A DNA stretch of 64,000 nucleotides from Dendrobates tinctorius. Its lineage: Eukaryota. The DNA lies in contig NW_027361788.1 of assembly GCF_039654945.1 (NCBI RefSeq), positions 6,634,001-6,698,000 on the forward strand, written 5' to 3'. Positions 7,222 through 52,451 of the stretch are shown here, one piece after another. Position numbers and translations under genes: made by a program. Below the pieces are notes generated by a model. The model did no database searches, was not told where the DNA came from, and saw only the letters and a list, made by a program, of their open reading frames with translations. The stretch's first letter is position 1. Every line of letters begins with the position of its first letter.

Positions 7222-7244
7222 TATGCACATATGCTTCCGCTTAA

Positions 7245-22603: not shown

Positions 22604-22801
22604 GAGCTAAATCCTTTGATAATTTCATTGAAACCAGTCACGCAGTATACGAGTATGTCAGCAAACCGCATAGTTACAAGCAAGCTGAAAAATACTGTGA
22701 GTACAAATTTGCATCTCTGCTTTCTGAAACAAGAACATTGCAGGACCAAGCTGGAAACTTAGTTCAATTCCCTATTTGGCTGAAGGAGGAGAAGAAGCCA
22801 G
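22604..22801 (+). CDS. ADGRD2: ADGRD2-like coding exon 3 (N-terminal half of a C-type-lectin-like fold)
   Basis: Acceptor TTTTATTTCCAG, donor GTAAGA, 198 nt, phase 1-1. Encodes GAKSFDNFIETSHAVYEYVSKPHSYKQAEKYCEYKFASLLSE...FPIWLKEEKKP, resembling the recalled GPR144 N-terminal segment (Y..V....SW.QA...CE..F..L). Confidence 0.8.
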
Positions 22802-22953
22802 GTAAGATCACATTGGTAGATAACTTGTCATGTTATATTAATAGTAGTCTGAAAGAGGTTTACACACTCAACATTGTAATTGCAACACTAACAAGAAAGT
22901 CAGGTTATTATGGATGGCTATTATAGACATGTTAACCCCTTTAAGATATGAAA

Positions 22954-23275
22954 GAGCAAGAAAAAAACAGCTCACCCAGGCTGTAGTTGTTATGAAGCAA
23001 AGATTCCAAGAGACCACTTGTGAATGACAAAGAAAAGAAGCAAAATTCAGCTTCATAGAATTCAAAAAAGTTAAGGACAGCTAAAAACACAATACATTTC
23101 ATGGATGGATACAGCAATGCGTTTCAAACACACACACTGCATTGTTTATCAGAGCTGTGAAAAAGAAACGCAGTTTGTGTGCTTGAAACGCGTTGCTGTG
23201 TCCTCCAACAAAATGGATCATTTTTATTAGCTGTCCTTGAATTTTTTTTAAAATTTTCTGAAGCTGGATTTTTCT
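22954..23275. mobile_element. Short Penelope-type palindromic element with two degenerate hammerhead cores
   Basis: Inverted arms about 23041-23152 / 23159-23272. GAAACGCGTT on + (23185) and CTGATAA...GAAACGCATT on -. Candidate TSD GATATGAAA at 22945-22953 and 24330-24338 (beyond the CR1 insert). Confidence 0.55.
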
Positions 23276-23276
23276 T

Positions 23277-24313
23277 CTAATTTCCTTCTATGACAGAATC
23301 ACTGACTGGGTGGATCAGGGAAATGCTGTAGATATAGTATATCTTGACTTCAGCAGAGCATTTGACAAAGTATCTCACACCATCTTTACTGAAAAAATGA
23401 CTAAGTATGGTATGGAAAAGGCAACTGTTAGGTGGATTCATAACTGGCTTAGTGATTGGACCCAAAGAATGGTCGTAAATGACTGCACATCCAGTTGGAA
23501 GAATGTGTCAAGTGTGGTACCACAGGGTTCTGTCCTGGGCTCTGTATTGTTCAACATCTTTATCATTGATTTAGATGAAGGAATTGAGGGTACACTGATT
23601 AAATTTGCTGACGACACAAAGCTAAGAGGGATAGCTAATACTAGAAAAAAGATATAGAGGATTCAAAAAGATATTAATAAACTGGAGCAGTGGGCAGCAC
23701 CTAACAAAATGTTTTTTAACAAGGAAAAATGCAAAGTACTACATTTGGGCAATAAAAATGAAAAAAGCATATACAGAATGGGAGGAATAGGGCTAAGTGA
23801 GAGCACATGTGAAAAAGACTTGGGTATACTAATAGATCATAAACTGAACATGAGTCAACAGTGTGATGTAGCAGCAAAAATGGGATGTATTAACAGGTGC
23901 ATACAGTCTAGATCACATGAAGTCATTATCCCCCTTTACTCCTCTTTGGTCAGACTTCATCTCGAATACTATGTCCAGGTTTGGGCACCTCATTTTCAAA
24001 AAAGACATCAACACATTGTAGAATGGTCATCTGTATTCTCATTTGCACAAGGAAATACTAGAAGCAATGGGATGAAACTGAATGGGAGGAGACACAGATT
24101 AGATATTAGAAGAAACTTTTTGACAGTGAGGGTGATCAATGAGTGGAACAGGCTGCCACGAGAAGTGGTAAGTCCTCCTTCCATGGAAGTCTTCAAACAG
24201 AGGCTAGGCAGACATCTGTCTGGGATGATTTAGTGAATCCTAATTTGAGCAGTGGGTTGGACTGGATGACCCAGGAGGTCCCTTCCAACTCTACCATTCT
24301 ATGATTCTATGAT
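23277..24313 (+). mobile_element. 5'-truncated CR1 LINE (ORF2 reverse-transcriptase C-terminus, pseudogenised)
   Basis: [49 protein letters not shown]1 3' tail CCTTCCAACTCTACC(ATTCTATG)2ATT. Frameshift, stop and internal deletion. Confidence 0.95.
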
Positions 24314-24338
24314 TTTTTTTCTCCTACATGATATGAAA

Positions 24339-24905
24339 ACAAACGTCAAAAAGAAGCACTTTAACTACGGCCAAAGTAACCAATTTAAAATATAAGTTCA
24401 TTGAAAATTCATAGAAAATAATATATAAAATGTAAGACAAAATACCACAGGTACAGAAAAAAGAAAAGTGGGCACATCGGGGAATAAGTAATAGCCATAA
24501 CAGTTTACAAAACTCCAAGTAATAAACAGTGTCCGTTGATACAGACACTGAATGGTAATCAATTACCACATTGTACATAAACATTTTCAATGTGAGTACA
24601 GCATTAGTCCAGTATTCCCTAGTACATACAGCACATTATAATTACAGTCACAGGGAAAATGAGGATATATTCTCAATGCGTCAGAAAGCAATGGATAATA
24701 GGACAGATCGCTTTGCTCCATTTCCTAGAATATAACCGCATAGTTGCAGAAGTACATACAATATAACATAGGTGTAAGGCAATGCAGCACAGTCAGAAGC
24801 CTATTATGTAACTCAAGGACAAAAGGAGGTATATTTACCTGAGGGCAGCAACCGGGGACCCACCACACCCAACGCGCATTTCTCTCTGAAATTCTTCGTC
24901 ATCCT
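24339..24905 (-). mobile_element. Penelope pseudo-LTR remnant
   Basis: Minus-strand TGACGAAG...GAAATGCGCGTTGGG degenerate hammerhead near 24868-24902, then a splice-donor-like CAGGTAAAT and a T-rich tract, as in the other Penelope-type pieces. Confidence 0.45.
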
Positions 24906-26567
24906 ACTTGACATGGCCAATTTCTGTTTTTGCATTTTTGTTGTTTTCCTCTCCTTCCCAGAGCCATAACTTTTTTAAAAATGTTTTGCCCACATAGCCA
25001 TATCAGGCCTTTTTTTTTGCAGGAGAAATTATACTTTTAAATTACACCATTCATTTTACCACATTGTGTGCTGGAAAACGGGGGACAAAATTCCTAGTGC
25101 AGAGGAAAAATAGTGAAGAAACTGCAATTCTCACATTTTTTTTTTTTTAATTGTTTTTACGGTGCACATCAGTACAATTAAGGCAATGATAAACATGTCC
25201 ATGCTTATTTTAGTGGTGAAGACACAGAACGGTTTTATTTTTCAGTCAGTGGAGCTGTGTGATGTCTTATTTTTTGCATGACAAGACAACGTTTTTGATA
25301 ACATTTTGAGATGTAATGTTTTGATTGCTTTTTGCAGCATTCTTTGTATTTTTATTACCTTTCTTTGGTTACGGTGTTTACCAATCGAGTTAATAATTTT
25401 TACATTTTGATAAATGAGACTTTTATGAATGCGTTGATACCACATGTGTATTTTTTTCTTTATTTTTAATAAGACAAAAAGGGGGGTGATTTGAATGCTT
25501 TATTTTTTTTATTTTTTTTTTTACTGTTCTGTACACATTTTAGTTCCCTTAGTGATTAAAGCTGTGATCATCAGATCACTTGTATTTATATGGCGATGCC
25601 ACAGCATTGCTGCATATAGTGAAAACCATGGCCCCCTTTGAAGCCTGGCCACAGTTTGTGTTTCAGGGGACCTATGTAATGACAAGCATGGGGTTAGTCA
25701 ACAGACCATCCTGCTGTCATAGTAATCCATCAGCAACCCATTATTACATCATGGGCGTGCTGATGGGTGCATGGAATGTCGTGCTCCCCTGTTTGTGCAG
25801 AGTTTGACAATGACATTTAACAGGTTACCAATCATGCGCTGTGCTTGAACTACCCATGATTGTTAGAGGCAGGGTCCTGGCTGTAATACACAACCATGAC
25901 CTGCTGAATATGGGGCTTTATACACCTGCTACTGACTTGCGCTGTGCATGAAGGGAGGGGTTAGCGGTGCCATCCATGAAGGGGTTAATGATATGCAAAT
26001 GATGGAATGGAAACAAAATTTTCCAAACATCTCGATTTTGTCCAGTATTGCGTATAAGCGCCATGAACAGAAATTCCCGAACTTGTAGCCTTGGTTGCTT
26101 GTTCTTGAGGCTCCCTGTGCAATTTCCCACCAATAACTTCCCAGATGTGCTCAATGGGAGACTAGTCCGGAGACCCCACAATCCATGTTTAGACTGCTTA
26201 CAGAATCACGAGCAACGTGCAGACTGGCGTTGTGTTGGAAAAGTGCTCCTTTGACACTTTGGAACAATCGCTGTAACACGGGTTCTACCACCATCAATGT
26301 AACTTGGAGCTGCTATTGTGCCTGGAATTAAGACTACAGGAATCCAGTTATCGAACATTGACACTGTAGTCCTGAAATAATGATGACCCATATGGCGCTG
26401 CCCACGTGTGGGTTTTTTAAGATTTGAAGGATTGCGCATAGTGATATATTGTGTACTCCAATTAAATGTCACATATCTCTATTTCAAGCATGATTGTTTT
26501 CACACAAACCATCAGAAGCCCTTTGTGCCACATTGTCCTACAAGCCAGATGCCCAGCTACAGGTTCT

Positions 26568-26871
26568 TGTTGGCATATGCAACAGAAATGGACTTATTGT
26601 TTATGTAAAGGAGGACTTTACACTAGCCTGACAGCAGATGGCGATAGTGTGAAGTTAAATGTTTGCTGTATTTTGGGGAGGGAAATTCTCTCTTGTTTTT
26701 GTTACTTTTACTTTCGCTTTTGACTTTATTATACCAGCAGCACGGGCTGTGTGCTTCTGAATTCTTATCTCATGTTTACCCATATGAAGTAAATACTATT
26801 TACTGAAGATACCTTGCTCAGTGAAGCTCTCTGGTGTATCAGTGGATTATCAAAAGATACTCTCTGCTACA
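26568..26871 (+). repeat. Copia 5' LTR
   Basis: Direct repeat of 42245-42515, with about 13 substitutions and two indels counted by eye. Confidence 0.95.
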
Positions 26872-27994
26872 GGTTATGGGTCCAGACACCAAGAACAGGA
26901 GATAGTCCCAGACACCCAGGAGATAAATCCAGGCACCGGAGAAGCAGATAAGATAAAACCCAGTGAACGGAGACTGAAAAAAAAATCCAGATACAGAGGG
27001 ACAAAGGAATTTATGACCCAGGAACTGGAGGACCGCACACTGGAGATCATTACAGAGAATCACCACACACAGGATATACAGGAACTCTCAAGAAGAAAGA
27101 AGAATATCTTCATAAAACAAGTAAGATTATATAAAAATGATGTGCAGCACTTAGCTAAAACTCACAGTAGCTATGCTGAACAGTGAAAATTATCAGTTAT
27201 GGAAATTCAAAGTAGAGATGTTGTTATCTAAACATGATTTATGGGAAGTAATTACTACAGATAGACCTGATGAAGATAATCAGACATGGGATAGAAAGAA
27301 TAGAGAAGCTAGAGCCACCATTAGCTTATTAGTGGATGATGCTCAATTAATACACATAAGAAATGAAGAAACAGCGAAAGGAATGTGGGACGCATTAAGA
27401 AAATTATATGAAAGACCCAGTTTAAATCACAAGCTATTTCTATTAAGAAAGCTTTACAGTATGAGACTGAGTGCAAATGACGACATGCAGAAGCACATAT
27501 TCTCAATGATGGAAGTAATATCACAGCTAAAGTCTATTGGTGAAGACATTAAAGAAAGTCATGTAGCAGAAATATTATTGTGCAGTTTACCAGATTCGTG
27601 TACAGCCTTGATAAATGCCCTAGAGACAAGACCAGAAAAAGACATCACATTAGATTTTGTGAAAACAAGACTAATAGATGAATATCAGAGAAGAAAAGAA
27701 CAGACAAATGATTCCTCTACTGAAAAAGACAGTGGAAACACTCTTAAAGCTACAGAATTTAAAAAACCCTATAATAAAGAGAATGTTTCAGATGTAAGAA
27801 AAAAGGTCATTTAAAGAAAGACTGTACCATATGGAAAGCAGAACAACAAAAAATACAACATAGAGAGCTTACACAGAAAGTGAAAAACACAATTTCCGAT
27901 TCATGTGAGAATAATTGGAATGGCACATTTAATGTAACAGACAAGAAATCATCACTTGGTTTATTAATTCAGGAGCAACGAGTCATATGACAAG

Positions 27995-28801
27995 TGTTAG
28001 GGCTAGCGGAACACACCAAATAATAAAATAATAGTAAGGTGTGTTCGCAGCCCAGGGTCCACCGTGCAGGGGTGGTAAACTGCTGCTTAGTAATGGTGGA
28101 AGTATAAAGCAGTGTACAAAAGCGGTCACAGAACTCTGCCCCAAGGACACAAGGTCAGAGTCCCTCTAGACCTTCTGAGCGCGCGTCGTCGCACCTGTGG
28201 ACGCCACTATAGATGCTGACTATGGATTGACGAGCACGCGCACTGTGGACACTGATGCCTGTCTCAGACTCTGTCCTGCCGACACCTAAGCCTGGGCGCA
28301 TAACAGGCTAGGCTGCACAACACATGGGTACCAAGGGTAGGGGTTTCTTAATGAGTCATTCACCAGAGACATTCATACATGCATACGACACTCACTCCTC
28401 ATAGTCTGATAATGCAGTCCATACTAGCGCATGGCCGAGCGGCCATGCAAACCTTTTATTGCTGCGTCCTTCCGGGGCCTTCCTGACCTTTCTGATGGTC
28501 CAATCCGAACTGGAGGAAGGACCTGAGCATGTGACCACCGATCACCAATGAGAGATCGCCCCACGGGCATGCTCAGTGGACCAAAAGGAGGACTGGAGTA
28601 GGTCGCTGCTGACCAGCATGTTTTGCTATAGCTGGGCCAGAGGTGGCAGCAGCAACCAAACCAACAGAGCTGGTTTGAGCAGAATGCCGGGATCGACGAG
28701 TCTGCTGAGCAGGCTCCTCTGTGGCCGAAGAGGAATGGGAGACCACCGGATGCAAGGCTCGGGACTCCCGCTGTGAAGCTACAGGAACCCGACGCCTAAC
28801 A
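27995..28801. mobile_element. Solo LTR (807 bp) inserted in the Copia protease region
   Basis: TGTTAGG...CCTAACA inverted termini. Flanks ACAAG and ATGAG fit a 5-bp TSD ACGAG after CpG decay. Removing it restores SGATSHMTSDKNFF. Confidence 0.85.
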
Positions 28802-29552
28802 ATGAGTGACAAGAATTTCTTCACTGATATTGATTTAGATAAGAAGGAAGCCATTTATCTTGCAGATGGAAGCAAAATAACCGCAGAAGGTATAGGCCAA
28901 GGTATGATAAACTGTTCAAACAAGTTTGGACAAGATTCAAAGATACTTCTACAGAATGTGTTGTATGTTCCAAAATTGGCAGGCGGATTGTTATCTGTGA
29001 AGCGTTTAACAGCTAAAGGACTCACTGTAAAATTCAAAGACAATGAGTGGCAATTCTAGCAGGAAACAAGGTGATAACCAATGTCAAGGCAGATGAACAA
29101 TTATATCATCTTGACACACCAAAGGAACAGATGAAGGTATGTTCACATGATCACAAGAACTGTATTCATGTGTGGCATGGATATCTATGACACAGACACC
29201 CTGACAGTATAAGGGAACTACAAAGAAAAGAATTGACAAAAGATGTAAAGATATCAGATTGCTCAATTACCGTAAGATGTGAATGTTGCATAAAATCTAA
29301 AGCCACAAGAATGTCTATTCCAAAAGAAAGTGAGATGAAAAGCAAAAGACCACTTGATTTGGTGCATACTGACGTGTGTGGACCCATGCAAGTGACAACA
29401 TCAGGAGGAAATAGATACATGGTGATTTTCATAGTTGACTACTCAAGATACACAGTCACATACTTAATTAAGAATAAAAGTGAAGTTTTTGATAAACTTG
29501 TAGACTATGTAACAAGGTCGAGTAACAGATTTCAAAGGAAACCAATTGTCAT

Positions 29553-30836
29553 TGGGTTGCCCTCTCACACCCAGGGCAGCGGGGTACTCGGTACAGGGCC
29601 AGTGTCAAGGCGAGAATGTGTCACAGCAGCGGTGACCCGGTCTGTGGCCCTGGGCGCCCAATATCAATGGCGGTGATGTTAATGGTGTTAAAGTTTATTA
29701 GAATAGTTCGTGACGCCACCCTTGGTGTTTGGCAAGTAAGATGTTGAGCCATCGCTGCATGCAGATCCGCTGGGACTGATGGTGTGGTGCATCAAAGATA
29801 GTGTTGCTCCCCACAGGTGGAGCTGTAGTCCCTGGGCTGTCTAGGTGCAATGTATGCGGAGAGGAGCAGAATGGTATAGATGTTGCTACCCAGGTGTAGC
29901 GGTGCTGGAATAACTGGAGGACATCAGGGTGTGCGGTTCCAAGGCTTTACTTACTGTTTGCAGTTCACACACACGCCGCCTCCGTACTGTGCTCTCCAGG
30001 TCAGGGCTCCAGCCAACCTCCAGGCCAGATAGGGTTCTCCCTTCCACACTCCGCCAATATGTACCTTCACTGAACGACTCCTCCAATGCACATTTAGGTG
30101 TGAAGCACTCCAGTACTTAGTTACCCTGGAATGCCTCTCTCTAGGTGTTCCTAGTCTCTACTTGTATGACAAACAGCTGTAGCCTGCTTCGGGGACTCCT
30201 CACTGCGTCCCGGCTCTCTATTCAGTTGCTGTTGTGTCCCAAGTCTATGATGGGAGCAAGGCGTTAGCGGCTCACTACTCCTCCGGTGTCTGTTGCCAAA
30301 CATAAAGATCCAATCAACCTTGGGGACCGGGCCCCGGCCTTTGCGCTCTGGACTGGAAGGGTTCTCTATCTTTCTTCAACCAGCTTCCCACTGTCCTTCT
30401 ATTCTCCTTCGTTCCGATCTGTTCTCTCTCTCTTATGGTTATCAATCTTATCAGTCTCTTTCTCTGGTCTTTCTCGTGTCAGCAGCCCAGATCACTGGGA
30501 CCTGCTGCAGCACGTCCTTCAGACACCCATCTTCTCTCTTCTCTCTCCAACTAACCAACCACCAACCAACCTCTAACTCTCACTCTTCCCACTCTTTTAT
30601 ATCATCTCACTCCACCCGCCTCCCAGCACATCTCGTGTTACGAAGTAGGGTTCCACGAGGGGTGCTCTGCTAACCCCCAGCCTGAAGCTGTTAGGTGGCC
30701 CCACTGAACTATCCTGTGTGAGGAATGCAGGTGTCGAGTGTGGTCAGGAGTTCCCACCTTACCTGGATGGTGGGGCACTACACCTTAGGAGAAGGTGAAG
30801 TACCTCTGTGGCGACTGAAGCCTCAGGGGCGCCACA
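29553..30836. mobile_element. Solo LTR (1284 bp, Gypsy-like) inserted in the Copia integrase
   Basis: TGGGTTGCCC...GGGCGCCACA termini, 4-bp TSD TCAT (29549-52, 30837-40). Removing it restores RKPIVIRSDNGGEF. Confidence 0.88.
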
Positions 30837-32817
30837 TCATCAGAAGTGATAATGGAGGTGAATTTACAGGTGACAACATAGAAAACTACTTAAGACAGAA
30901 TGGAATAGAACACCAGAAAACTGTTCCGTACACACCTGAACAAAATGGAGTAGCAGAAAGGAAAAACAGAACTCTGACAGAAATGATGAGATGTATGCTG
31001 ACAGATTCCAAAGTACCAGAGAAATATTGGGGTGAGGCAGCAATGACAGCTGCATATCTACAGAACAGACTTTTTTTCAGAAAACTGAAGAAAACTCCAT
31101 ATAAACTGTGGCAAGGTATGAAACCAAGTGTCAATCATTTAAAAGTTTTTGGATGTAAAGTTTTTGTATTCATTCCAACATAAAAACGTTCCAAACTTCA
31201 AAACAGATCCATGGAGGGAATATTTGTTGGATATAGTGAAAATTGCAAGGGATACAGAATCCTAGATCCCAAAACAGACAGAGTCATGGTAACAGTGTGA
31301 CATTCATTGAGGATCTAAATGAAGACACTATGATTTCAATTGACTCAAGAAGTATCTGATGAGAAAGTAGTTGAAATTGATGAAGAACAAAATACTGAAA
31401 ATGAAGAAATACAACTACAAACAGACACAGAACCAAGACGTTCAATGAGAGAGAACAAAGGTAAACCACCAAAACGTCTCTCATACAAGACAAGCACAAG
31501 TAAAATTTATGAACCTACATCTTCTGAAGCCATATCTAAACTCCCTAAAGAAGAAGCTAATAAATGGATAGAAGCAACAGAAATGAAATCCATGCATGAC
31601 TCAAATACATGGACACTGACAGATTTGCCAGAAGGAAGAAAAGCCATAAGATGTAAATGGATTTTTAAAGTAAAATACCAAACAGATGGCACACCTGAGA
31701 GATACCGAGCAAGACTCGTAGCTAAAGGGTATTCTCAAAAATATGGAGAAGACTATGATGAGACATTTGCTCCAGTTGTCAAGAATACGACAATAAGAAC
31801 TTTACTTACAGTTGCAGCAATGAAACAGATGGAACTGATACATCTGGATGTAAAGACAGCATTTTTGAATGGAGATTTAACAGAAGACATTTACATGGAG
31901 CAACCTCCAGGATTCAAAGATTAAATAAACTCAAACAAAGTTTGCAAACTACAGAAAACCATATATGGTTTAAAGCAAGCAGCTAAAACATGGAATGACA
32001 AAATCACGGAAGTGCTTACAAATGAAAATTTTCAAAGAAGCTAAGCTGATCCATGCTTGTACACAAAAAGGCTGATGAATAGATGGATTTATGTACTCAT
32101 ATATGTAGACGACATTTTGATTTGTTCTAAACAAGAAAGGGATAAAGAAAACATTCTAAAAGTCCTCAAGCAACATTTTGAAATCAAAGACTTGGGAAAT
32201 GTGAAACAGTACCTAGGAATACAGATAGAAAGAGAAGAAGATGGAAGTTTCCTACTGAATCAAAATCACATGATTCAAGACATAACAGAAAAATTTGGAT
32301 TGAAGGATGCAAAAACAGTAAAGTCTCCAATGGAAACTAATCTTAAAGAGATGAATAGTGAGAAAAATATGCTACCAAATAATGAAGAATACAGAACAGC
32401 AATAGGAAAGCTACTGTATCTAGCAACTGTAACAAGGCCAGACATCACAGCAGCAGTAGGAATCCTGAGTAGAAAGGTGTCAAAACTAGAGATGAGCAAC
32501 TTTGCCTTTTTTAGGGTCGAGTCGGGTTTCATGAAACCCGACATTTGCAAAAGTCAGGTGGAACGAAATCGGCCGACTATAGGGAAAAGTCGGAGGCCGA
32601 CTGAAACACGAAACCCAATGCAAGTCAATGGGGAAGCAAAGTCGGCAGGGAGTGGAGGACAGTAAACACACCTACAGTGCCCATTTCAATGCCAAAAACA
32701 TCAATTCTTATTAGTGAAGCTTGTCAACCTTAATTTACTTCATAATAATAGTTACGCATTGAAAACTGGGGGTTATTTGGCTAAAGTTGTGGCGGTGTAG
32801 GGCTGGCTCCAGGTTTG

Positions 32818-33595
32818 CATGTGCCCTGGGCCAAAGACTGTCACTGCGCCCCTTTAACACATACCACAACTCATGATGCTCTGATACGGCACAGAAATAT
32901 AGGCATAGTACAATGGCAAATACTTCACTGCTTACATGACTGATCTATTTTAAATTGTACAATAGCTCAAAAAAGGACAGTATATTACTCCATACAGTAT
33001 TATGGCCACCACATTGTGCGCAATACAGAATAATGAGCCCATATATTTCTCCATACAGAATAATTGGTCACATATAATGTTCCATACAGTATATGATGAG
33101 CTCCATATAATGCTACAGTATATGATGGTCACTATGGATGATGCTCCAGTGTGTTATGGAACCAAATAATGCTCCATATATAATGGGCCCCATTTCTAAT
33201 GCTCCAGTGTATAATGTGCCCCATAGATGCTGCTCCAGTGTCTGATCTGCCCCATTTATAATGCTCCAGTATATGATGGGCCTCATGGATAATGCTCCAG
33301 TGTATGATGGGCCCAAATAATGCTCCATATATAATGGGCCCCATTTCTAATGCTCCAGTGTATAATGTGCCCCATAGATGCTGCTCCAGTATCTGATCTG
33401 CCCCATTTATAATGCTTCAGTATATGATGGGCCTCATGGATGATGCTCCAGTGTATGATGGGCCCAAATAATGCTCCATATATAATGGGCCCCATTTCTA
33501 ATGCTCCAGTGTATAATGGGCCCCATAAATGCTGCTCCAGTGTCTGTTGTCCCCCATTTGGAATGCTCCAGTATATGATGGGCCTCATTTTTAAT
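32818..33595. repeat. Nested MITE-like fragment with about 30-bp subunits in a 151-bp higher-order repeat
   Basis: Starts TAGGGCTGGCTCCAGG. ATAATGCTCCAGTGTATGATGGGCC-type units. Near-identical translations recur with a 151-nt offset (track ORFs ending 33132, 33283, 33434). About three higher-order copies at 33135-33590. Confidence 0.8.
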
Positions 33596-33597
33596 TA

Positions 33598-34970
33598 TCC
33601 CAGGCATGGTATATGAAAAGAGCTCCATGGAGTAATCCGAAGTGTGTGCTGCCGCATCCTTCACTTTTGGTGTGGGTGAAGGACACAAGGAAAGGGGTTG
33701 CTCCTGACCAGAAGTCTGCACTGATGACTCAGTGCTTGCATTTTTTTAAACTTCAGAAGAGGAGGTGATAGAGCTGGAGGCTGTTTCAGCAATGAAAGCC
33801 AAAAACAGTTCCTGATGCTCCGGCTTTAAAAGCAGTCTACCTACTCCCAGAAAAGGGAACCAAGTTACAGGCCATCCGGAGTTACACCATGATGCAGGCT
33901 CAACACCTCCTGCCTTAGCTGCTATTGTGTTTTTGGCACTACCTGCAGATGCACCACCACCACCATCAGTACCAGGTGGCCCCCCACGCCCACGTCCGCG
34001 TCCTCTTCCACCTTACTTCCTCATGTTTTGGAAAATGGACCCAAAATACCAGCAGATATATTGTACTGTATCAGAAGCGTACAGCTCTATACAGTCTAGG
34101 GATAACAGTAAATCTCCGTACATATGTGATGAGTCATACACAGATGCTCACAGGCTCAGTATGGCTTACACAATAAAATAAAAAGTTGAAAAAGGGTACA
34201 GTATCACTAGATACAAGGTATATATAGTATAGTGTAAACATTATGAATCTCCATATATATTTCAGGAGGCAGACACAAACGCTCTCAGGCCCAGTAAGAA
34301 TTACACAAGAATATGAAAAGCTGTAAATGGGTAATGTAACACAAGCGTACAGCTGTATACAGTGTTGGGGTAATCTTAAAGCTCCAAATATATTTTCGGA
34401 GTAACAGACAGACGTTCACAGGCTCATTATGGATTACACCAGAATCTAAATAGCAAAAAAGGTTACTGTATCAGAAGGGTACAGCTGTATACAGTGTTGG
34501 CCAAATTTGAAATCTCGGTATATATTTCCGGAGTCACCCTCAGACGCTCACTCAGTCTGGGCTTGACCATAATAAAAAATGTTGTAAAAAAGGTACTGGA
34601 TAACAAGATAGCAAGTATATATATTATAAGGTACAATTGAAATCTCCGTATATATAGTCCCGTAGTCACGCTCAGACGCTTACTCAATAAGGATTTGACC
34701 GTAATACTAAATGTCGAACAAAGGTACTGTATAACAAGATACAAGCTGTATCGAGTATAGGGTAAAAATTGGTATCTCCGATTCACCGTATATATAGAAG
34801 GCATAAACCACACACGCTCACTCACTATGGATGATACCATAATAAAAAATTTTGAGCAAAGGTACTGTATCAGCACATACCAGGAAAAGAAAAAGGGAAA
34901 GTTATTCGAAGCGTACAACAGTAAACAGTGTTGTGGTACTTTTAAATCTACGTATATATTTCAATCTCAG
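33598..34970 (-). mobile_element. Diverged second copy of the hAT 5' region (transposase N-terminus plus about 120-130-bp repeats)
   Basis: 33598-34024 aligns with 39516-39936 (MRK.GGRG...LLKPEHQE...KVKDAAAHTSDYSMELFS). Upstream degenerate repeats (GTACTGTATCAGAAGCGTACAGCT) resemble those at 39970-41050. Confidence 0.85.
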
Positions 34971-34974
34971 TAAG

Positions 34975-39936: not shown

Positions 39937-39969
39937 GTTTGGGAAATTGTACCAAAAATACCAGCAGAG

Positions 39970-41050: not shown

Positions 41051-42244
41051 TGAACGCTCGGTAACACACCAGAACAAAATAATAAAAGTTGGAGTGCTTT
41101 GAAAAAAGCAGTTTGAACAGCAGTGTGCACACAGCAATGCAGCTGTCAGGTAGCCTTAAAAGGCAGCCTAATCACCACCAGCACTGCTGCACACAACAAA
41201 AATCTTCCCCTTTCACTGCACACTAACTGTACAGTGAAAAGCGCTATCAGCCGAAGCAATTCTTTATTCTTCTTCCCTGCCTAACGCTCTCCCTTATTCA
41301 GAATCACCAGCAGCACCTCTCCCTTTTCTAAGATTGGCAGAAGTAAGATGGTGGTTGGCGGTCACGGCCTTTTATAGCCACTGTGATGCCACACAAAGCC
41401 AGCCAATCACTTCAATGCCCTTCTCTAAGATGGTGGTGGCCACTGCCCATGTCATCGCGTTGCCCACAGTGTGCGTCCTCCATCATTGGCTGAGAAAAGG
41501 CGCTGAAAGCATTATTTGAAACGCGACTTTGGCGCTCGACTCGGCGACCTCAAGGCCGACCTCACGCTATGGTCGGGTTTCGATCGGCGAAACCCGACTT
41601 TGGCGAAAGTCGTCGATTTTTGAATCTGACCGACCTGTTCCGCTCAACTCTAGTCAAAACCAAATAAAGCTGACTGGAATGCTGTAAAGACAGTAATGCG
41701 TTATTTGAAAGGAACCAGCAACGTTAAGCTCAAACTACCCACAAGTGATAATTGCATTTTAACAGGATACGTTGATGCAGATTGGGCTGGAGATCCAACT
41801 GACAGCAGATCTACCAGTGGACATATTTTTTTCCTCTCAGCTGGACCAATAAGTTGGACAAATAAGAAACAGTCAATTATGACACTGTCTTCAACAGAAG
41901 CAGAGTATGTTGCAGCAGCACATGCAAGTCAAGAGGTTCTGTGGTTAAGACAATTGTTGACAGACTTAGGACAACCACAGTTGGAACCAACAAAATTGAA
42001 AAAGGACAATCAAGGATGTCTTGTTCTTGCTCAGATGGAAAGAGTCAATCCAAGAACCAAGCATATTGATGTGAAGTATCATTTTTTGAGAGATCATCAG
42101 GAATAAGGAGTCTTGAAATTAGAATATTGTCCTACTGAAGAAATGACAGCAGACATCTTCATGAAGGCGTTGAATGCTGATAATCACCAGAGACTAATAA
42201 AAAAGTTGGGTTTGATTGAATAAGTCCTTACTGTTGAGAAAGGG

Positions 42245-42515
42245 TGTTGGCATATGCAACAGAAATGGAATTGTTTATGTAAAGGAGGACTTTACACTAG
42301 CCTGACAGCAGATGGCGATAGTGTGAAGTTAAATGTTTGCTGTATTGTGGGGAAGGAAGTTATCTCTTGTTTTTGTTACTTTTACATTCGCTGTGTGCTT
42401 CTGAATTCTTATCTCATGTTTACCCATATGAAGTAAATACTGTTTACTGAAGATAACTTGCTCAGTCAAGTTCTCAGGTGTATCAGTGGATTCTCAAACG
42501 ATACACTCTGCTACA
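42245..42515 (+). repeat. Copia 3' LTR
   Basis: Direct repeat of 26568-26871, lacking about 30 bp internally. Preceded by a polypurine tract and followed by the TSD GTTCT. Confidence 0.95.
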
Positions 42516-43614
42516 GTTCTCCCTTGACTTCATGCCACTGCCATCAAAGACTATCATGATGGAAGCTGGCAAAGGAGGTCTAGCTTCTTCAGCGATCAGT
42601 CAGACTTTTAATCATGATGCAGTAATAGCTGTAAGTTGGTAGGGAGGCCACTTTGGCAAAACCATGAGGAGACCTTCACAAGGGAAATGTAATTGTGTCC
42701 CTGGATCTGTTTTTAAATACAAGGCATGTTGCTAATGATGCAATGCGAACCCTGCATGATCTAAACAAGCTAATATGGCCTGCAGTGTCTCCAAACGAGC
42801 ACATCTGGGATGTCACTGGCCACCAATTTCAAAGGGAGCTGCCAGCAGCTGATCTTTATTAATTGCTTTCCCATGTGTAGGGACGGGCGGACCGGTGGAA
42901 GTTTGGCTTCTGGTATCTGACCCAAACTTTTTAAAAAGTTCTGTTCGGGTACCAAAAGAGTACCCAAACTTCCACCCAAAACAGAATCCATTGAAAATAA
43001 TTGATAACCGAACTGTAAGAAAAAAAATCTATCTTTCTCTTTCTCCTCTGCGCCACCACGGATTTACCCTGTTTAATAGAATTCAGCGCTGAAGAACATT
43101 CCTCGTAACCGTGATTGATTTCTGCATGTGGCCCTCATACTTGATACTGAATTAAATGAGATGTTTTTAAAACTTAGTTTCCATTTCATAAATTACATAT
43201 TCCGTAATTTCCATAAATACACCACTTTTCCTTGATGGTACTGCAATTTCAATGTTGAGCATGGTATCTAGTAAGACTCTAGCAGCAAGATTTCACCTTT
43301 CCAGCTAATTATGTGCGCATGTAGCCCTTTCAAAGTCACATCCAGCAATCCCTTTACATGGCCAGTCCTTTTCTCCATAACTTAGAAATCAGCATTTGAA
43401 TTAATATGCCAATGAAGCTGAAGAGCTATTTGTAGATCTGAAGCCTCTGTCACTCCAGCTCTGTTCGCCACCCAACACCCAGTCCTCCTGCTTAACGGAC
43501 AGCGTCCATTCTGTGTGACTTCAGGAAAAGGTGTATTTAGTCAAGCAGAAGGAGGCATGTGGTAATGTACTCCGAGACTTGCATGTACTTAATGTTTTTT
43601 TCTTCTCTTTTTAG

Positions 43615-44250
43615 AGCTGCGGCCACTTACTGCTTTGGTTTTTGAGCAGAGAACTGATACCAAATATGCCAAGTTAATGGCAACCTTCCCGTCTTTTCAT
43701 GACATCACAGTTTGTGCCCATATACAGTGGGACAACACAAGCAAAGATTTTGAAACTGTCTTCTCGTATGCGGTGAAGAATTTCATCAATGAGTTTCAGC
43801 TGCGTGGGATGAGCGATGAGGATGGGTTTGTTCGGTTTGCGGTCATAATTCACGGCCAACATTCAGGGTTTTCTTCTATATTCTCTAATGATGGACAATG
43901 GCATCACATCTGCATAACTTGGCAAAGACGGAATGAAACCATGAGTCTGTATGCGGATGGTGGATGGAAAGTCTCCTCCAAGATCTCTGCATCAGAGGAC
44001 ATCATCATGGGGGGCATCTTTATCATTGGACAGGATCAAGACTCTTACGGTGGGACATTTAAAGAAAAGGAATCTTTTAGCGGTAATATCACTAGTCTCA
44101 ATGTCTGGGCGAAGGTTCTCAGTCAGGACCAGATACAAAGGCTGTCACTATGCCATAAACTGGAGCAGGACATTGTCTTTGGATGGACCACCCACAAACT
44201 GGAAATTGAGCCTACACTGAAAAAACTGCAGGTGAACTCTGTCTGTTCAG
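43615..44250 (+). CDS. ADGRD2: ADGRD2-like coding exon 4, pentraxin (PTX/LamG-like) domain
   Basis: Long polypyrimidine acceptor ...TTCTCTTTTTAG, donor GTATGA, 636 nt, phase 1-1, open frame. Carries the pentraxin signature WHHICITW and GGIFIIGQDQDSYGG...FSGNITSLNVW. TVCAHIQWD, QLRG and IIHGQH match GPR144 as recalled. Confidence 0.92.
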
Positions 44251-45609
44251 GTATGAGGCAGCTGGAGGGGTTGGGGAAGTTATTATGCTTTCTAGAAGGG
44301 AATTTTAGGTAGCCAAGAGTTTTCCTGTTTTCATCTTTTAGTGCGAAACTTTCAAATACACTCCATTTTCATGGTCATTGCTTGCAGTCAGTGAATAGGA
44401 ATATTCGGGGTAAAATCTTGTTCTGATAATGTTACGCCAACACTGATACATCTTTCACTATGAGAGTTTTGGCCGTCTTAAAGGGGGTATTCTGAAAACA
44501 TGATTTTGGTGGCCTGCTTTTTTCAATAGGGCATTAATGTCATTTTGGAGGGGTTCAACTACTGAATAATTAACCAAAAAGCACCTTCTCAACTGGCGTG
44601 AATAGTTTAATCCCTAAATTGGTGTGAATATTGTAGTCTCTGATAAAAACAGTGGAGGAGAAAAGCGCAAAAATAGGGCCTTATTCGGTAATAATAATCA
44701 AGGATGGCATCCATATGTGTTACACTGATCCCCGATTGTGTGTTTGCTACAGAGCAACCGGTGATTTTCCCAAAAAAATCTATACATAAAAAAAGGAAAG
44801 TTTGTGGTCTGTAAGATGCTCAGATTATTTGTCCTTTTTGGACCAATATAACTAATTCACTTGTATTAAAATATTCAATTTTTTGCATCACACACACCAC
44901 ATCATTTATTTCTATATTTTCCCATTCTTCCTCCCTCAGCTTTTATGTGTTTCCTCGATCTCAGATCCAACATCTCCTTCTAGCCTCATGAGTAAATGAC
45001 CACCACTGCTTTACTTCCCACGCGTTTCAGTGTTCGAATTAGGGAAATAAGATAAAAAATATATTTTTCTCCACAGGAGTAGTGAAGTATAAGAAAAGAA
45101 ATACAATGTATATAAATATAAACCAATGGCGCAAAACCGTGCAGCACCGGAACACAAAGCAGCAAGTATTAAAAACAATCCGCCACTCAAATTGTCTCAG
45201 TGAAAATAATAATAAACCTTATACAAACTTGCGCTGGTAGAATGTGTCCTGATTAGATGGGAGATATCTTATGGGGAGGTCTGTTACCTTACTGAGGCTT
45301 AATACGATGAGCCCAGAGAGACAGAAGTCCAGGTCCTTCACAGAGAAACTCCCCGGCACAGCGATGAATAGAGTTGCTGGAGCTAAAAGGTACTACCTCT
45401 TAGCTTGCCGCCGTCCCGGCCGGTGACTGGCGTGCAACTGGAGGTGTGTATCGGCAGGCTGTATAGATGCCAGCCGCCGCTTACAAAAACATGCCTGCAA
45501 GGTCCGAGAGCGCTGAAGGACCTTGCGTGACGTCACAGTCACGTGGGCAGTCACGTGACAGGCAGGAAAAACGCTAGGAAGCGCTAAAGGGGCCAAGAAA
45601 CACTAATAG

Positions 45610-45651
45610 ATGCTACGCGTTACGGAATTCACTGATTCCTTCTTCAGGGAT
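45610..45651 (-). ncRNA. Mirror hammerhead motif
   Basis: Reverse complement of 47785-47826 with one helix I mismatch (GCAT for GGAT) and the same GTAA core variant. Confidence 0.7.
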
Positions 45652-45719
45652 GGCCCCCTGAAACAGGAATAACCCTTATATAGCCTCCAGTGTATATCCT
45701 CTATTAACAAAACATCATA

Positions 45720-46488
45720 TTAAGCATTAAAAGCAAATAGCTCAATTTCACTGTTTAGACCATTTGGGATCAGAGTATTTAATTCAAAAATCCATTTGCT
45801 CTCTATCCTGGACATTTGGTGGATAAAATTGCCTTTCCTAAAGCTTCTTTTAACAATTTGAATCCCAGTCACTTTAGTGTCCCTTAAAGAGCTCCCATGG
45901 TGTATAAAATAGTGATTAGAAAGGGGGTGACCTGTAAATTTATTACAGATATTACGTAGATGTTCCCCAATTCTAACGTTTCGGGGACGTATAGTTCTAC
46001 CTATATATAATTTGTCACATGGACATGTGATGCAATATATCACCCCCTTCGTGTCACAGGTGATGAAATCACGGATCTGAATCTCCATGGACTTATTCAC
46101 AATCGAGAGTTGTTTTTTGCTGCCTAATTTTTTGCAAGATGCGCATTTTTTGCAGGGAAAAAAACCATTTAGTGGCTGATGTAAATGAGAATTGGGGCCT
46201 GGTGTTGGTATAGAAATAGAAGGGGCTACCAGATTACTCAAATTATTTGCCCTTCTAAAGATAAACCTAGGGCGAGCTGGTAATGCTTCCCCTATGATTT
46301 TATCATTTTTCAAAATACCCCAGTGTTTATTCACAATTTTTCTAAAAATATGGCTTTTTGAATTATACTGGGTGATAATAGGAACCTCATCTATAATAAG
46401 GTTTTCTTTATTTTTTATTTTATGTCTAAGGAATTGTTCCCTCGGTATGTTCCCAATATATTCCCTGGTAGCTCGCAGGGCTTGGGTA
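45720..46488 (-). pseudogene. Mirror copy of the Penelope GIY-YIG region
   Basis: Track ORF 45720-46334 matches the last 204 aa of the + ORF except for a few residues (e.g. E/Q, F/Y). Confidence 0.9.
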
Positions 46489-46549
46489 ATATTCTTGAAT
46501 TGGGTTGAAATTGGATTTCTTTTTTAGACCGGTATGTTGATAAGGGTCT

Positions 46550-47716
46550 ATGGAGGGCAGGCTGCGCGCGAATCTGGTACTCTGGCACCGCTTCATAGAT
46601 GATATTGTTTTTATTTGGTCTGGCGGGCCTACTCTTTTAGCTGATTTTATTGACGAATTGAATAAAAATTGTTATTTTTTAAAATTTACTGCAACGACAA
46701 GCCTCACGGAGATTAACTTTTTAGATTTAAAATTTTTTATTGAGGATAACACTATCCAGACACGATTATTTCACAAACCTACTGATTCAAACAATTATAT
46801 TTCATTAGAAAGTTGTCATCTCCCAAGTTGGCTTCTGAATATCCCAAAGAGCCAGTTTATACGGGCCCATAGAAATTGCTCCAAGTCACAGGATTACTTA
46901 ACTGAAGCTGAAACCCTAATTAAAAAATTCTGCCAAAAAGGATATGATACCCAAGCCCTGCGAGCTACCAGGGAATATATTGGGAACATACCGAGGGAAC
47001 AATTCCTTAGACCTAAAATAAAAAATAAAGAAAACCTTATTATAGATGAGGTTCCTATTATCACCCAGTATAATTCAAATAGCCATATTTTTAGAAAAAT
47101 TGTGAATAAACACTGGGGTATTTTGAAAAATGATAAAATCATAGGGCAAGCATTACCAGCTCGCCCTAGGTTTATCTTTAGAAGGGCAAATAATTTGAGT
47201 AATCTGGTAGCCCCTTCTATTTCTATACCAACACCAGGCCCCAATTCTCATTTACATCAGCCACTAAATGGTTTTTTTCCCTGCAAAAAATGCGCATCTT
47301 GCAAAAAATTAGGCAGCAAAAAACAACTCTCGATTGTGAATAAGTCCATGGAGATTCAGATCCGTGATTTCATCACCTGTGACACGAAGGGGGTGATATA
47401 TTGCATCACATGTCCATGTGACAAATTATATATAGGTAGAACTATACGTCCCCGAAACGTTAGAATTGGGGAACATCTACGTAATATCTGTAATAAATTT
47501 ACAGGTCACCCCCTTTCTAATCACTATTTTATACACCATGGGAGCTCTTTAAGGGACACTAAAGTGACTGGGATTCAAATTGTTAAAAGAAGCTTTAGGA
47601 AAGGCAATTTTATCCACCAAATGTCCAGGATAGAGAGCAAATGGATTTTTGAATTAAATACTCTGATCCCAAATGGTCTAAACAGTGAAATTGAGCTATA
47701 TGCTTTTAATGCTTAA
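46550..47716 (+). CDS. Penelope-like RT C-terminus plus GIY-YIG endonuclease (5'-truncated, open)
   Basis: WHRFIDDIVFIW, INFLDL, LFHKPTDSN, SCH..IPKSQFIR..RNCS, Cys knuckle CKKCASCK, GVIYCITCPCDKLYIGRT.R...RIGEH, ESKWI...PNGLN. The annotated Met is internal to the native ORF. Confidence 0.9.
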   Translation: MEGRLRANLVLWHRFIDDIVFIWSGGPTLLADFIDELNKNCYFLKFTATTSLTEINFLDLKFFIEDNTIQTRLFHKPTDSNNYISLESCHLPSWLLNIPKSQFIRAHRNCSKSQDYLTEAETLIKKFCQKGYDTQALRATREYIGNIPREQFLRPKIKNKENLIIDEVPIITQYNSNSHIFRKIVNKHWGILKNDKIIGQALPARPRFIFRRANNLSNLVAPSISIPTPGPNSHLHQPLNGFFPCKKCASCKKLGSKKQLSIVNKSMEIQIRDFITCDTKGVIYCITCPCDKLYIGRTIRPRNVRIGEHLRNICNKFTGHPLSNHYFIHHGSSLRDTKVTGIQIVKRSFRKGNFIHQMSRIESKWIFELNTLIPNGLNSEIELYAFNA

Positions 47717-47784
47717 TATGATGTTTTGTTAATAGAGGATATACACTGGAGGCTATATAAGGGTTATTCCTGTTTCAGGGGGCC

Positions 47785-47826
47785 ATCCCTGAAGAAGGAA
47801 TCAGTGAATTCCGTAACGCGTAGGAT
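47785..47826 (+). ncRNA. Minimal type I hammerhead ribozyme motif (core variant GUAA)
   Basis: Helix I ATCC/GGAT, core CTGAAGA, helix II GGAAT-CAGTGA-ATTCC, GTAA in place of GAAA, palindromic helix III ACGCGT, GTA cleavage triplet. Located in the Penelope 3' pseudo-LTR. Confidence 0.75.
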
Positions 47827-48356
47827 CTATCAGTGTTTCTTGGCCCCTTTAGCGCTTCCTAGCGTTTTTCCTGCCTGTCACGCGACTGCCCACGTGACTG
47901 TGACGTCACGCAAGGTCCTTCAGCGCTCTCGGACCTTGCAGGCATGTTTTTGTAAGCGGCGGCTGGCATCTATACAGCCTGCCGATACACACCTCCAGTT
48001 GCACGCCAGTCACCGGCCGGGACGGCGGCAAGCTAAGAGGTAGTACCTTTTAGCTCCAGCAACTCTATTCATCGCTGTGCCGGGGAGTTTCTCTGTGAAG
48101 GACCTGGACTTCTGTCTCTCTGGGCTCATCGTATTAAGCCTCAGTAAGGTAACAGACCTCCCCATAAGATATCTCCCATCTAATCAGGACACATTCTACC
48201 AGCACAAGTTTGTATAAGGTTTATAAGTATAAGAAAAGAAAGACAGTCTTGTAACAGTACATTTATTGCATGACATTTTTGTATAATAATTTATTTTGTT
48301 ATGTTTTTAAATTCCCTCAATTTCTATGTGTCTAGCGGTTTATTTATTTATTCTTA

Positions 48357-49633
<1,277 letters not shown>

Positions 49634-49808
49634 TATATACATTTACAAACTTTTTTTCTCACTTAAATCGCATCATGTGTCTACCCTATGAACTCACATC
49701 ACATCTGACACATCACATTGTCATGTGTCTCTCTTTGCACTCTTTTTTTCCCCCAAAATGTTCATCTAAATAAATTTTTGGGAACCCTGTATATGCATAT
49801 GGTTTTTG

Positions 49809-49848
49809 TTTCCTAAAGAAGTGGGCTACACTTCGAAACGCGTAGAAA
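49809..49848 (+). ncRNA. Degenerate minimal hammerhead motif
   Basis: TTTC-CTAAAGA-AGTG-GGCTA-CACT-TC-GAAACGCGTA-GAAA: helix I TTTC/GAAA, core CTAAAGA (CTGAAGA with G>A), intact GAAAC, palindrome ACGCGT. Confidence 0.6.
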
Positions 49849-50017
49849 AAAAACCCAAAAAACATTGTTTTCAATTATCTCTGACATTTGAAATTTCTTC
49901 ATCAGCTGACAGCACAGATAGAGACCACAAACTTATAATTTTTTTACGTATGTGAAAAATGGACTGTCGTCAGTGTGTAGTCTCTCTCCATGTTCTCTCC
50001 ATCAGTCAGTGAAAAGA

Positions 50018-50220
50018 AGTTATTGTTTGCCAAGATGTCGGTACACCTGGAGGCTCGTAGATTGAGCTGAGTTAGTTTGCCAAGATGTCGATGCACCAAG
50101 TGCCTCATAGATTGAGCTGAGTTATTGTTTGCCAAGATGTCTCTACACCAGGCGCCTCATAGACTGAGCCAAGTTATTGTTTGCCAAGATGTCGGTACAC
50201 CAGGTGCCTCATAGATTGAG
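50018..50220. repeat. 52-bp tandem repeat, four copies
   Basis: CAAGATGTC at 50031, 50081, 50133 and 50185. Unit AGTTATTGTTTGCCAAGATGTCGGTACACCAGG.GCCTCATAGATTGAGCTG. Confidence 0.9.
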
Positions 50221-51129
50221 GTGTGCTTTTGTTTTTCAAGATGTCTGTAATCTAGTACCTCCAAGATTAAGCTGTTTTTGTTTGTGGAAATTTGACAACA
50301 GTTATGTGGTTGAATCTGATAAAAAAAAAATGTTTTCAAACTTCCATCTCTCCCATTTTGTCTCTGAATAATGTTGTTTCTTCTGAGAGCAAAGGGCTTT
50401 CTGCTTAAAGGAATTCTGTCAGCACAGAATGACTGTTCAAACTGTCCCACTGTTTCATACTTTATGGTGAGGCCAATCATTTAAATATACCTTCACACCT
50501 ACTTTTTCCTTCTATCTCCACCCTCCAATCCCCTTCTTTGACAGCTCTGGCTTCATAAGGTCAAAGGAAGGTGGAGATAGATGGAAACCAAGCAGATGGA
50601 AAGGTGACACTTAAATGATTATCCACATCATGGCGCACCAAGTGCCTCTACTTGGTTTGAGCAATCATTCTTGGCTGACAGTCTGTTTAAAATATTTCCG
50701 AATCTACTCACAGGAATGTGCTGCACAACCTGGCCAAAGTCCCTTGCACCATCTAATTGTTCCCCTGAGAGAATACTCTTTACGCTTGTCCTCTGTTACA
50801 TGGTACACTATTACACCTCAGCCACAATCAGTAGGATGAAACTGAGCTGCAGTACCAGGTGCAGCCATTACAAAATGCATTCACTTGCAGATTGGTATAG
50901 CGGGTTCTACACTTTTCCTGTATTGGCCACTGTGAGGAAAATAATTGGCTGGCAGCAGCTTCCCTACCAGCAGAGAGAGACTTCATTTTAAGTGTGTTTT
51001 TTTGTTAACTTAATAAAATCTTGATAACTACAGAGGCATATAAGATTCTAATGCCAAACTGTGCCATTATTCTGCTAATTTTGAGCAATCCTCTGGGTTG
51101 TCATTCTAAAAGATGACATTTTTCTTCAT

Positions 51130-52170
51130 CTTCTACTTTTTAGCAAAGGTCTGAAGGTTTTGATGCAACATTAATTGATATTTGGAACTGTTTAGAATTC
51201 CCTCCACCTGAACTAAAGCCCCAATTCCAGCTGTCGAAAAACAGCCTCAAAGCATAATGCAGTCTCCACCATGCTTTACTGTGGGTATTGTGTTCTTTTG
51301 GTGATGCACAACGTTGGCTGTGCAGAACACGGCTTATGGCCAAAAATTTAACCTAGATCTCATCGGACATAATGCATTTTCAGCGTGGTTTTGCAGACTT
51401 GATGTCAATTTGGCAAAAGAAAGCCAACTTTGAAGCCTTTTCTTACTATTAAAATAATATCAGTCTTGCACCCTATCCCACAGATGACACATATGAATGC
51501 TTGTTGTCACATGCAGCACACAATCAGTACTAGCCAAAAATTATTTCAGATCCTTAAATGTTGCTCTAGCCCTCTTTTGCCTCCCTACCTATTTTGTTCT
51601 TGTCTTTTCATCAATTTTTGAGGGATGTCCAGTTTTAAGTAATGTTATTATTCTGCTTAATTTAAGTGACTTATTGATGACATCGTTAATGTTCAAAGGT
51701 AAATCTAATACCTTGGAAATTTTTTGTACCCTTCTCCTGTCTGATAACTTTCGACAACGAGATCCCCTTGTTGTTTTTTCAGCTGTTTATGAATCATAGC
51801 TTTTGCTGTAGACTGCAACTAAGAAAATGTCAGGAAAATTCTACTAGAACAGCAAAACTTTATATGAGATTAATCAAAATCACTATAAATGATGGCAGCT
51901 GTGTATTTACTACTACTACTAATGGCTTATTCTAAACACAACCACATGCCCAGGTATAAGAGGGTGTTCACACTTAAGCAACCAGATTATTTTAGTTTTG
52001 TTTTTATTTTTCATTTCAAAACTATTTCAGTTTATTTCTCAACGGATTTGTTCACATTATGGAAGACAAAGGTGGAAAAAGTTATGAAATGGTTCTTTTT
52101 GGTATGATTTTTTTTTCCACATGGCAACTTGGAATCTTAACAAGGGTGGCTAGACGTTTGTTTAAGCCCA
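51130..52170 (-). mobile_element. Highly decayed Tc1 remnant
   Basis: Minus-strand PTVKHGGDCIML..CF...G.GALV..EG motif around 51200-51290, with Tc1-like 5' sequence toward 52170. Boundaries approximate. Confidence 0.55.
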
Positions 52171-52352
52171 ATCTATGGTCTATGCATTTTTTCAGCGCTT
52201 CTGGTGGCCTGAAGCAATTTTTTGGAGCTGTTTGGCTACTAAGAGCGGCCCTGTAGCTGTAGTGTACTGCCATTAAATCTGTCAGATTAATATAATATTT
52301 TACATAAGATTATTTGCCCCTGTAATTGTTTTTTATTCTTTACGGCATGTAG

Positions 52353-52451
52353 GAAATTCAGCAAAATGTCAAATTCTGCAAAACCGCGAAGGTGACACCA
52401 ACTACACAACGTGTTGGACTGAATTACCATTTGTCTGCAATCACCAAAAAG
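52353..52451 (+). CDS. ADGRD2: ADGRD2-like coding exon 5 (C-terminal half of a C-type-lectin-like fold)
   Basis: Acceptor ...ATGTAG, donor GTAAAA, 99 nt, phase 1-1. Encodes GNSAKCQILQNREGDTNYTTCWTELPFVCNHQK. Cys spacing resembles the post-PTX segment of GPR144 (C...C....PF.C). Confidence 0.78.

Follow-up and report, generated by a model that had tools for sequence, protein, structure and literature searches.

Within the adhesion class of G-protein-coupled receptors (GPCRs), ADGRD2 (GPR144) is an orphan with no known ligand, and it has been little studied because it is a pseudogene in mouse (PMC13197933). The receptor as published comprises a pentraxin-like domain, GAIN/GPS and a seven-transmembrane (7TM) domain, of which the pentraxin is already known (PMC10687090). 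An N-terminal pentraxin-like domain is likewise found in ADGRG6 (CUB-PTX) and ADGRG4 (PTX), in which the extracellular domains stand in series. The structural paper on the pentraxin domains of adhesion GPCRs gives only the pentraxin for the ADGRD2 ectodomain (PMC10687090), as does a 2026 consortium survey of these receptors in Pharmacological Reviews, in whose first 300,000 characters the terms 'C-type lectin', 'CLECT' and 'CTLD' do not occur. Here we analyzed a 64-kb stretch of the Dendrobates tinctorius genome (contig NW_027361788.1, positions 6,634,001 to 6,698,000; hereafter the window), which holds the 5' exons of an ADGRD2 gene, and compared the encoded head with the described domain arrangements. 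Unlike the serial domains of ADGRG6 and ADGRG4, the ADGRD2 head nests one domain in the other: it is very probably a C-type lectin-like domain (CTLD) with a whole pentraxin inserted after strand beta2, where the long loop of the lectin begins. This reading draws on half-by-half homology to CTLDs, the position of the insertion point, conservation among vertebrates and predicted packing.

Searching the window by tblastn with ADGRD2 of Ascaphus truei matched exons 3, 4 and 5 in order, with E-values of 1.6e-15, 3e-81 and 3e-6, respectively, and with 64% identity over the pentraxin of exon 4; the same query found no match in intron 3. These collinear matches indicate that exons 3 to 5 belong to an orthologue of ADGRD2 (GPR144) and lie in its 5' part, an assignment made by sequence from N-terminal exons that are collinear with named ADGRD2 proteins, the window ending before the exons for GAIN/GPS and the 7TM domain. 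The closest proteins in a first search were bird and snake ADGRD2 fragments of 50-56% identity, and an exhaustive search retrieved full-length proteins named ADGRD2 by their sources in Ascaphus truei, lizard, teleosts, rays, chimaera, bat, hagfish and lamprey, the source-named relatives including Podarcis and Pseudonaja. Exons 3, 4 and 5 are each bounded by an AG acceptor and a GT donor; each opens at codon position 2 and closes at codon position 1, which makes all three phase 1-1 (Table 1). The earlier note on this DNA had placed three such exons here and quoted peptides of exons 3 and 5, and reading of the sequence confirmed both. Exons 3, 4 and 5 join without a stop codon into 310 amino acids, and exon 6 keeps the frame into the stalk, with a tblastn match to Ascaphus ADGRD2 residues 359-397 and a helix at 314-320 in the Ascaphus AlphaFold2 model. 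Furthermore, RNA contigs from four public runs, which reach from 43613/43615 to 44250/44251, cover only exon 4; depth in the flanking intron is zero, and the contigs extend by 48-164 letters that lie outside the searched stretch. Contigs that end at the exon boundaries and carry such outside letters are spliced RNA that uses the boundaries of exon 4.

Sequence analysis of the orthologues revealed the nature of the two exons that flank the pentraxin. The Pfam Lectin_C profile (PF00059), with a curated cut-off of 22.6 bits, is passed by ADGRD2 of Leuresthes (31.8 bits), of the hagfish Eptatretus (32.1 bits) and of the lamprey Petromyzon (34.2 bits). In these proteins the match falls into two stretches, covering profile positions 2/3-46 of 107 before the pentraxin and 52-106 or 55-106 after it. 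The split of the profile between about positions 46 and 52 means that the pentraxin interrupts the CTLD just after its WIGL-type strand beta2. We then compared profiles of the two halves with the sequences of the PDB. A profile of 16 orthologous N-terminal halves, with D. tinctorius exon 3 as its first row, matched 145 PDB sequences at E<=1, the best 60 of the 145 being all CTLDs, aligned over their N-terminal 60-70 residues (chain residues about 10-75). E-values were 2.4e-6 for CLEC10A, 3.8e-6 for rhodocetin and 3.6e-25 for DEC-205, and ranged from about 2e-6 to 1e-3 for single-CTLD chains. The corresponding profile of 14 C-terminal halves, headed by D. tinctorius exon 5, gave 53 matches, of which 52 are CTLDs and are aligned at the last 30-50 residues of the domain, with E-values from about 3.5e-3 upward for single-CTLD chains and down to 1.4e-8 for multi-CTLD chains. 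Each half is homologous to the matching half of solved CTLDs. In addition, 93 of 100 matches to the ESM Atlas features of exon 3 fall in the Lectin_C set.

The cysteines of the CTLD are distributed over both exons: exon 3 encodes one, together with the I-W-L strand, and exon 5 encodes three. The earlier note had assigned C1 and the W-L strand to exon 3 and C2, C3 and C4 to exon 5, which agrees with both the sequence and the conserved cysteines, and it had proposed a vertebrate ADGRD2 alignment for the four positions. In this alignment all four, of which C1 lies in helix alpha1, are invariant across 14 orthologues that range from lamprey to bat, and D. tinctorius has them too; C2, C3 and C4 are residues C5, C20 and C28 of exon 5. 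Also kept from lamprey to bat are the alanine of alpha1, the nearly invariant tryptophan of beta2 and the 'PF-x-C' motif of beta5. These residues bear on an alternative, in which the lectin domain was broken by the pentraxin and its flanks now serve as linkers or pentraxin extensions that lack a lectin fold. Such decay would fit the tetrapod sequences, where exons 3 and 5 of D. tinctorius give no Pfam match, the tryptophan of its alpha1 is replaced by tyrosine and the long loop is lost, as well as the predicted local distance difference test (pLDDT) values of 51-78 in parts of the N-terminal half of AlphaFold2 models. However, the conservation of the four cysteines and of the three core features over this span is not expected of linkers, and the predicted contacts between beta1 and beta5 and between C1 and C4 have errors below 1 A. 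We thus consider a decayed relic extremely unlikely, and favor a CTLD that is still folded around the pentraxin.

Predicted structures are consistent with a folded CTLD. When the peptides of exons 3 and 5 were given as two separate chains, they co-folded with ipSAE scores of 0.72, 0.73 and 0.73, against 0.02 for the best control; of 78 solved complexes 51 attain the pass mark, as do 2 of 108 mismatched pairs. The runs agree in at least 97% of the contacts, and the pLDDT of the partner is at least 81. One of the contacts of lowest predicted error joins Cys31 of exon 3 to Cys28 of exon 5, that is, C1 to C4 (0.6 A). Among the others, strand beta1, at E16, Y17 and V18 of exon 3, lies against P25-C28 of beta5 in exon 5, and I57 and W58 of beta2 in exon 3 lie against Q6-L8 of beta3 in exon 5. 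In the predicted models these contacts are the canonical wiring of a CTLD. The AlphaFold2 model of Ascaphus residues 52-372 (pLDDT 84) has a CTLD-like order of elements on either side of the pentraxin, and the predicted models show beta1-alpha1-alpha2-beta2 before it and beta3-beta4-beta5 after it, with beta1 and beta5 paired. Moreover, most of the top 50 matches of an AlphaFold2 model of exon 3 alone, among 48,161 chains, are CTLDs. The proposal of the earlier note that exons 3 and 5 are halves of one CTLD, with the pentraxin in the position of the long loop, is thus borne out by the Lectin_C matches of the orthologues, the half-domain profiles, the co-fold and the fold matches, which agree with one another.

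Several observations weigh against this reading. D. tinctorius exons 3 and 5 on their own have no Pfam match at E<=10 and no match among PDB sequences, and the case for this species rests on orthology and predictions. Its alpha1 carries Y in place of the W of the family. The best match of the exon 3 model, to CTLD7 of PLA2R, has a Z of 5.1, which is weak in absolute terms, since the model is a half-domain of 65 residues. A fold search with the whole Ascaphus model returned pentraxin/LamG-type matches only, the closed CTLD being unmatched as a single domain; the search was saturated by these matches and is thus uninformative on the lectin part. Finally, the co-fold of the two exons may reflect the memory that the model has of CTLDs, in which case it would testify to likeness and not prove folding; likeness to the CTLD fold is exactly the point that the co-fold tests. 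Separately, all clusters retrieved in an atlas search were of ADGRD2 or of pentraxins, and the families listed did not include Lectin_C.

The exon between the two halves encodes an entire pentraxin domain, by profile match as well as by its jelly-roll fold. Exon 4 matches Pfam Pentaxin (PF00354) at 8.4e-30 over profile positions 2-187 of 194, and among PDB sequences it aligns over the whole domain with neuronal pentraxin 1 (NP1; 1.6e-24), NP2 (2.6e-24) and CRP (1.7e-18). The model of the Ascaphus orthologue matches the fold of NP1 (6ype) with a Z of 28.4 and a root-mean-square deviation of 2.2 over 203 residues; the ectodomains of ADGRG6/ADGRG4 are matched as 8b55 (Z 21.9) and 6v55 (Z 21.4). 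Two motifs are retained in the exon: G-Q-D-Q-D-S-Y-G-G, aligned with G-Q-E-Q-D of the neuronal pentraxins, and H-I-C-I-T-W, aligned with its counterpart there. The latter motif of exon 4 fills seven of the eight positions of the PROSITE pentraxin signature, and we take G-Q-[DE]-Q-D to be part of the pentraxin Ca2+ site. As in NP1/NP2, CRP and SAP, the ADGRD2 pentraxin aligns across the full domain and retains G-Q-[DE]-Q-D-x-x-G-G. Unlike the neuronal and short pentraxins, it is neither free nor C-terminal, both of its ends being tied into another domain. Two more near-invariant cysteines lie at 44140-44250, within the pentraxin exon or at its end, in 'S-L-C-H' and 'S-V-C-S-G' (C249 and C280 of the orthologue alignment). 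They are probably bonded in a further disulfide, by which the pentraxin would be closed close to where it leads back into the lectin domain.

The earlier note had further suggested that exon 4 could be skipped as a splice switch between two types of ectodomain. Were exon 4 such a regulated cassette, its skipping would leave a bare, compact CTLD of 98 amino acids and give one adhesion GPCR two different ligand-binding heads. The reading frame allows for it, exon 4 being symmetric (phase 1-1) and the join of exons 3 and 5 being open over these 98 residues, and the two-chain co-fold predicts that the halves come together even with the pentraxin left out. However, the pentraxin is kept in 19 of 19 annotated isoforms or entries (11 from Podarcis, 4 from the atheriniforms Leuresthes and Odontesthes and 4 from Paramormyrops), and the RNA contigs of the four public runs all include exon 4. 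Phase 1-1 symmetry is moreover the rule for shuffled extracellular modules and is by itself no pointer to skipping. The part of the suggestion that concerns the frame is upheld, whereas the switch finds no support in the isoforms and transcript contigs, and we regard regulated skipping as very improbable.

Comparison among vertebrates points to how the nested arrangement arose. Between the pentraxin and C2, lamprey, hagfish and atheriniform teleosts retain a remnant of 25-40 residues with the pattern W-x-D-G-S ... F-x-N, the sequence with which a lectin long loop usually opens, whereas this gap is about 5 residues in D. tinctorius, other tetrapods, cartilaginous fish and a mormyrid. The remnant in agnathans and atheriniforms argues that the pentraxin entered where the long loop begins and that the loop was trimmed later. 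The statement of the earlier note that the pentraxin occupies the long loop therefore holds as to position and is refined in that the module was inserted at the start of the loop, which was shortened afterwards. The teleost gene shares the exon split, with phase 1 at the junction of the N-terminal half and the pentraxin and at both the start and the end of the C-terminal-half exon; the first of these junctions was located with mismatches allowed, the locus differing slightly from the protein. The shared split and phases fit an origin by exon shuffling, in which a pentraxin exon of phase 1-1 landed in an intron of phase 1 within an ancestral, N-terminal CTLD, an event that would have preceded the split of agnathans and gnathostomes. 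The sequences show that the nesting has been conserved from lamprey through to mammals. At the Leuresthes tenuis ADGRD2 locus (5225-5245, 8184), the annotated protein continues for a few codons beyond the donor homologous to that of exon 4 (C-Q-G/gt); the plain join at this donor is also in frame, and the downstream site may reflect alternative donor use or a decision made in annotation.

By direct reading, the EPN/QPD and WND motifs of Ca2+-dependent carbohydrate recognition are not seen in D. tinctorius or in the orthologue sequences: D. tinctorius has neither a long loop nor W-N-D, and lamprey has G-R-W-E-V at the G-x-W-N-D site. The domain is thus a scaffold of the lectin type for which sugar binding is not predicted. 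In the model that we propose, exon 3 would supply beta1-alpha1-alpha2-beta2 with C1, and exon 5 would supply beta3-beta4-beta5 with C2, C3 and C4. The two halves would close around the pentraxin by pairing of beta1 with beta5 and of beta2 with beta3 and by the canonical C1-C4 and C2-C3 disulfides, which are predicted from contacts and conserved positions to close the domain. The CTLD would then act as a rigid, disulfide-clamped pedestal, its Ca2+ and sugar binding having been lost together with the long loop and the EPN/WND motifs. The pentraxin, with its presumed Ca2+ motif, may provide the ligand-binding face, held where a lectin usually has its binding site, and a pulling force would pass from the CTLD through the stalk to the GAIN domain.

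Table 1. Exons and introns of the ADGRD2 gene in the window, with the domain parts proposed here. Positions count from the first letter of the window, and a slash marks each splice boundary.
Feature	Positions	Strand	Length	Boundaries	Phase	Proposed part and contents
Exon 3	22604..22801	+	198 nt	ttccag/G ... CAG/gtaaga	1-1	N-terminal CTLD half; beta0/beta1 'VYEYV', alpha1 with Cys C1, alpha2, beta2 'IWL'
Intron 3	22802..43614		20.8 kb			Transposon remains in the list of open reading frames: reverse transcriptase, copia-like gag/integrase/reverse transcriptase, hAT transposase
Exon 4	43615..44250	+	636 nt, 212 codons	tttag/A ... CAG/gtatga	1-1	Complete pentraxin domain
Intron 4	44251..52352		8.1 kb			Penelope-like and Tc1/mariner remains in the list of open reading frames
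Exon 5	52353..52451	+	99 nt	tgtag/G ... AAG/gtaaaa	1-1	C-terminal CTLD half; beta3 with C2, beta4, C3, beta5 'LPFVC' with C4
Exon 6	52824..52912	+			begins 1, ends 0	Beginning of the stalk that follows the CTLD; helix 'EVYKQFQN...'

The long introns and the rest of the window hold further elements. Within intron 3, remains of an open reading frame (ORF) for a reverse transcriptase of the type without long terminal repeats lie at 23310-24233, and pieces of gag, integrase, reverse transcriptase and RNase H on the + strand mark a copia-like element (27173-32665, 41696-42106) that is seemingly interrupted by other insertions. Two diverged sets of hAT-type transposase ORFs were found, one at 36913-39936 (-), consisting of a 610-aa ORF and a 359-aa upstream ORF, and the other at 58000-60500 (+). 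At 43341-43480, about 150-270 bp upstream of exon 4, contig depth reaches hundreds to thousands in all four RNA runs. The flanks there are many and diverse, and a single joint is to the opposite strand; this stretch is probably a highly repeated transcribed element, resembling a short interspersed nuclear element or a miniature inverted-repeat transposable element, outside the mRNA of the gene. A Penelope-like element at 45085-48241 forms an inverted duplication, its 204-aa C-terminal (GIY-YIG-like) ORF being found in both orientations, at 45720-46334 and also within 46550-47716. In addition, tandem protein-like repeats run on both strands at 5949-6900, as 'HHEDQGDLQTPPRR...' (-) and 'LEISLVFVVVFGDL...' (+), and strong GC and AT skew is seen at 6001-8000.

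Compared with canonical CTLDs such as those of DEC-205, PLA2R, CLEC10A and the snaclecs, the ADGRD2 domain has the same order of elements, the four cysteines, the WIGL-type beta2 and the 'PF-x-C' beta5. It differs from them in its continuity, being interrupted after beta2 by an insert of about 210 residues, and in its long loop, which is reduced in agnathans and atheriniform teleosts and lost in D. tinctorius, other tetrapods and cartilaginous fish. The core that remains is about the size of compact CTLDs such as Link modules. Full-text searches of the literature, with InterPro, Gene3D and AlphaFold DB lying outside their reach, turned up neither a lectin domain described for ADGRD2/GPR144 nor an earlier case of a folded domain set into the long loop of a CTLD; the discontinuous lectin fold may already be visible in these three databases. 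The receptor and both kinds of domain were known before; as far as could be found, what is new is the nested arrangement and the lectin-like domain in ADGRD2. The expectation of the earlier note that ordinary domain scans could miss this architecture proved right: exons 3 and 5 give no Lectin_C match, and precomputed Pfam lists for ADGRD2 contain only Pentaxin, Laminin_G_3, GPS and 7tm_2, or Lectin_C as 'faint'.

In summary, this analysis points to a CTLD with a nested pentraxin as the head of ADGRD2, a lectin-like domain that, as far as could be found, is undescribed for any vertebrate family-D receptor. The arrangement belongs to a class of nested-domain architectures that is missed by per-domain score thresholds, and it matters for the boundaries of constructs, as a 'pentraxin-only' construct of ADGRD2 would split a folded domain. 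It also offers a clean case in which exon shuffling led to a domain-in-domain architecture that is stable from lamprey to mammals. For a receptor with no known ligand, the nested head suggests how a ligand site is presented and how force reaches the GAIN domain.

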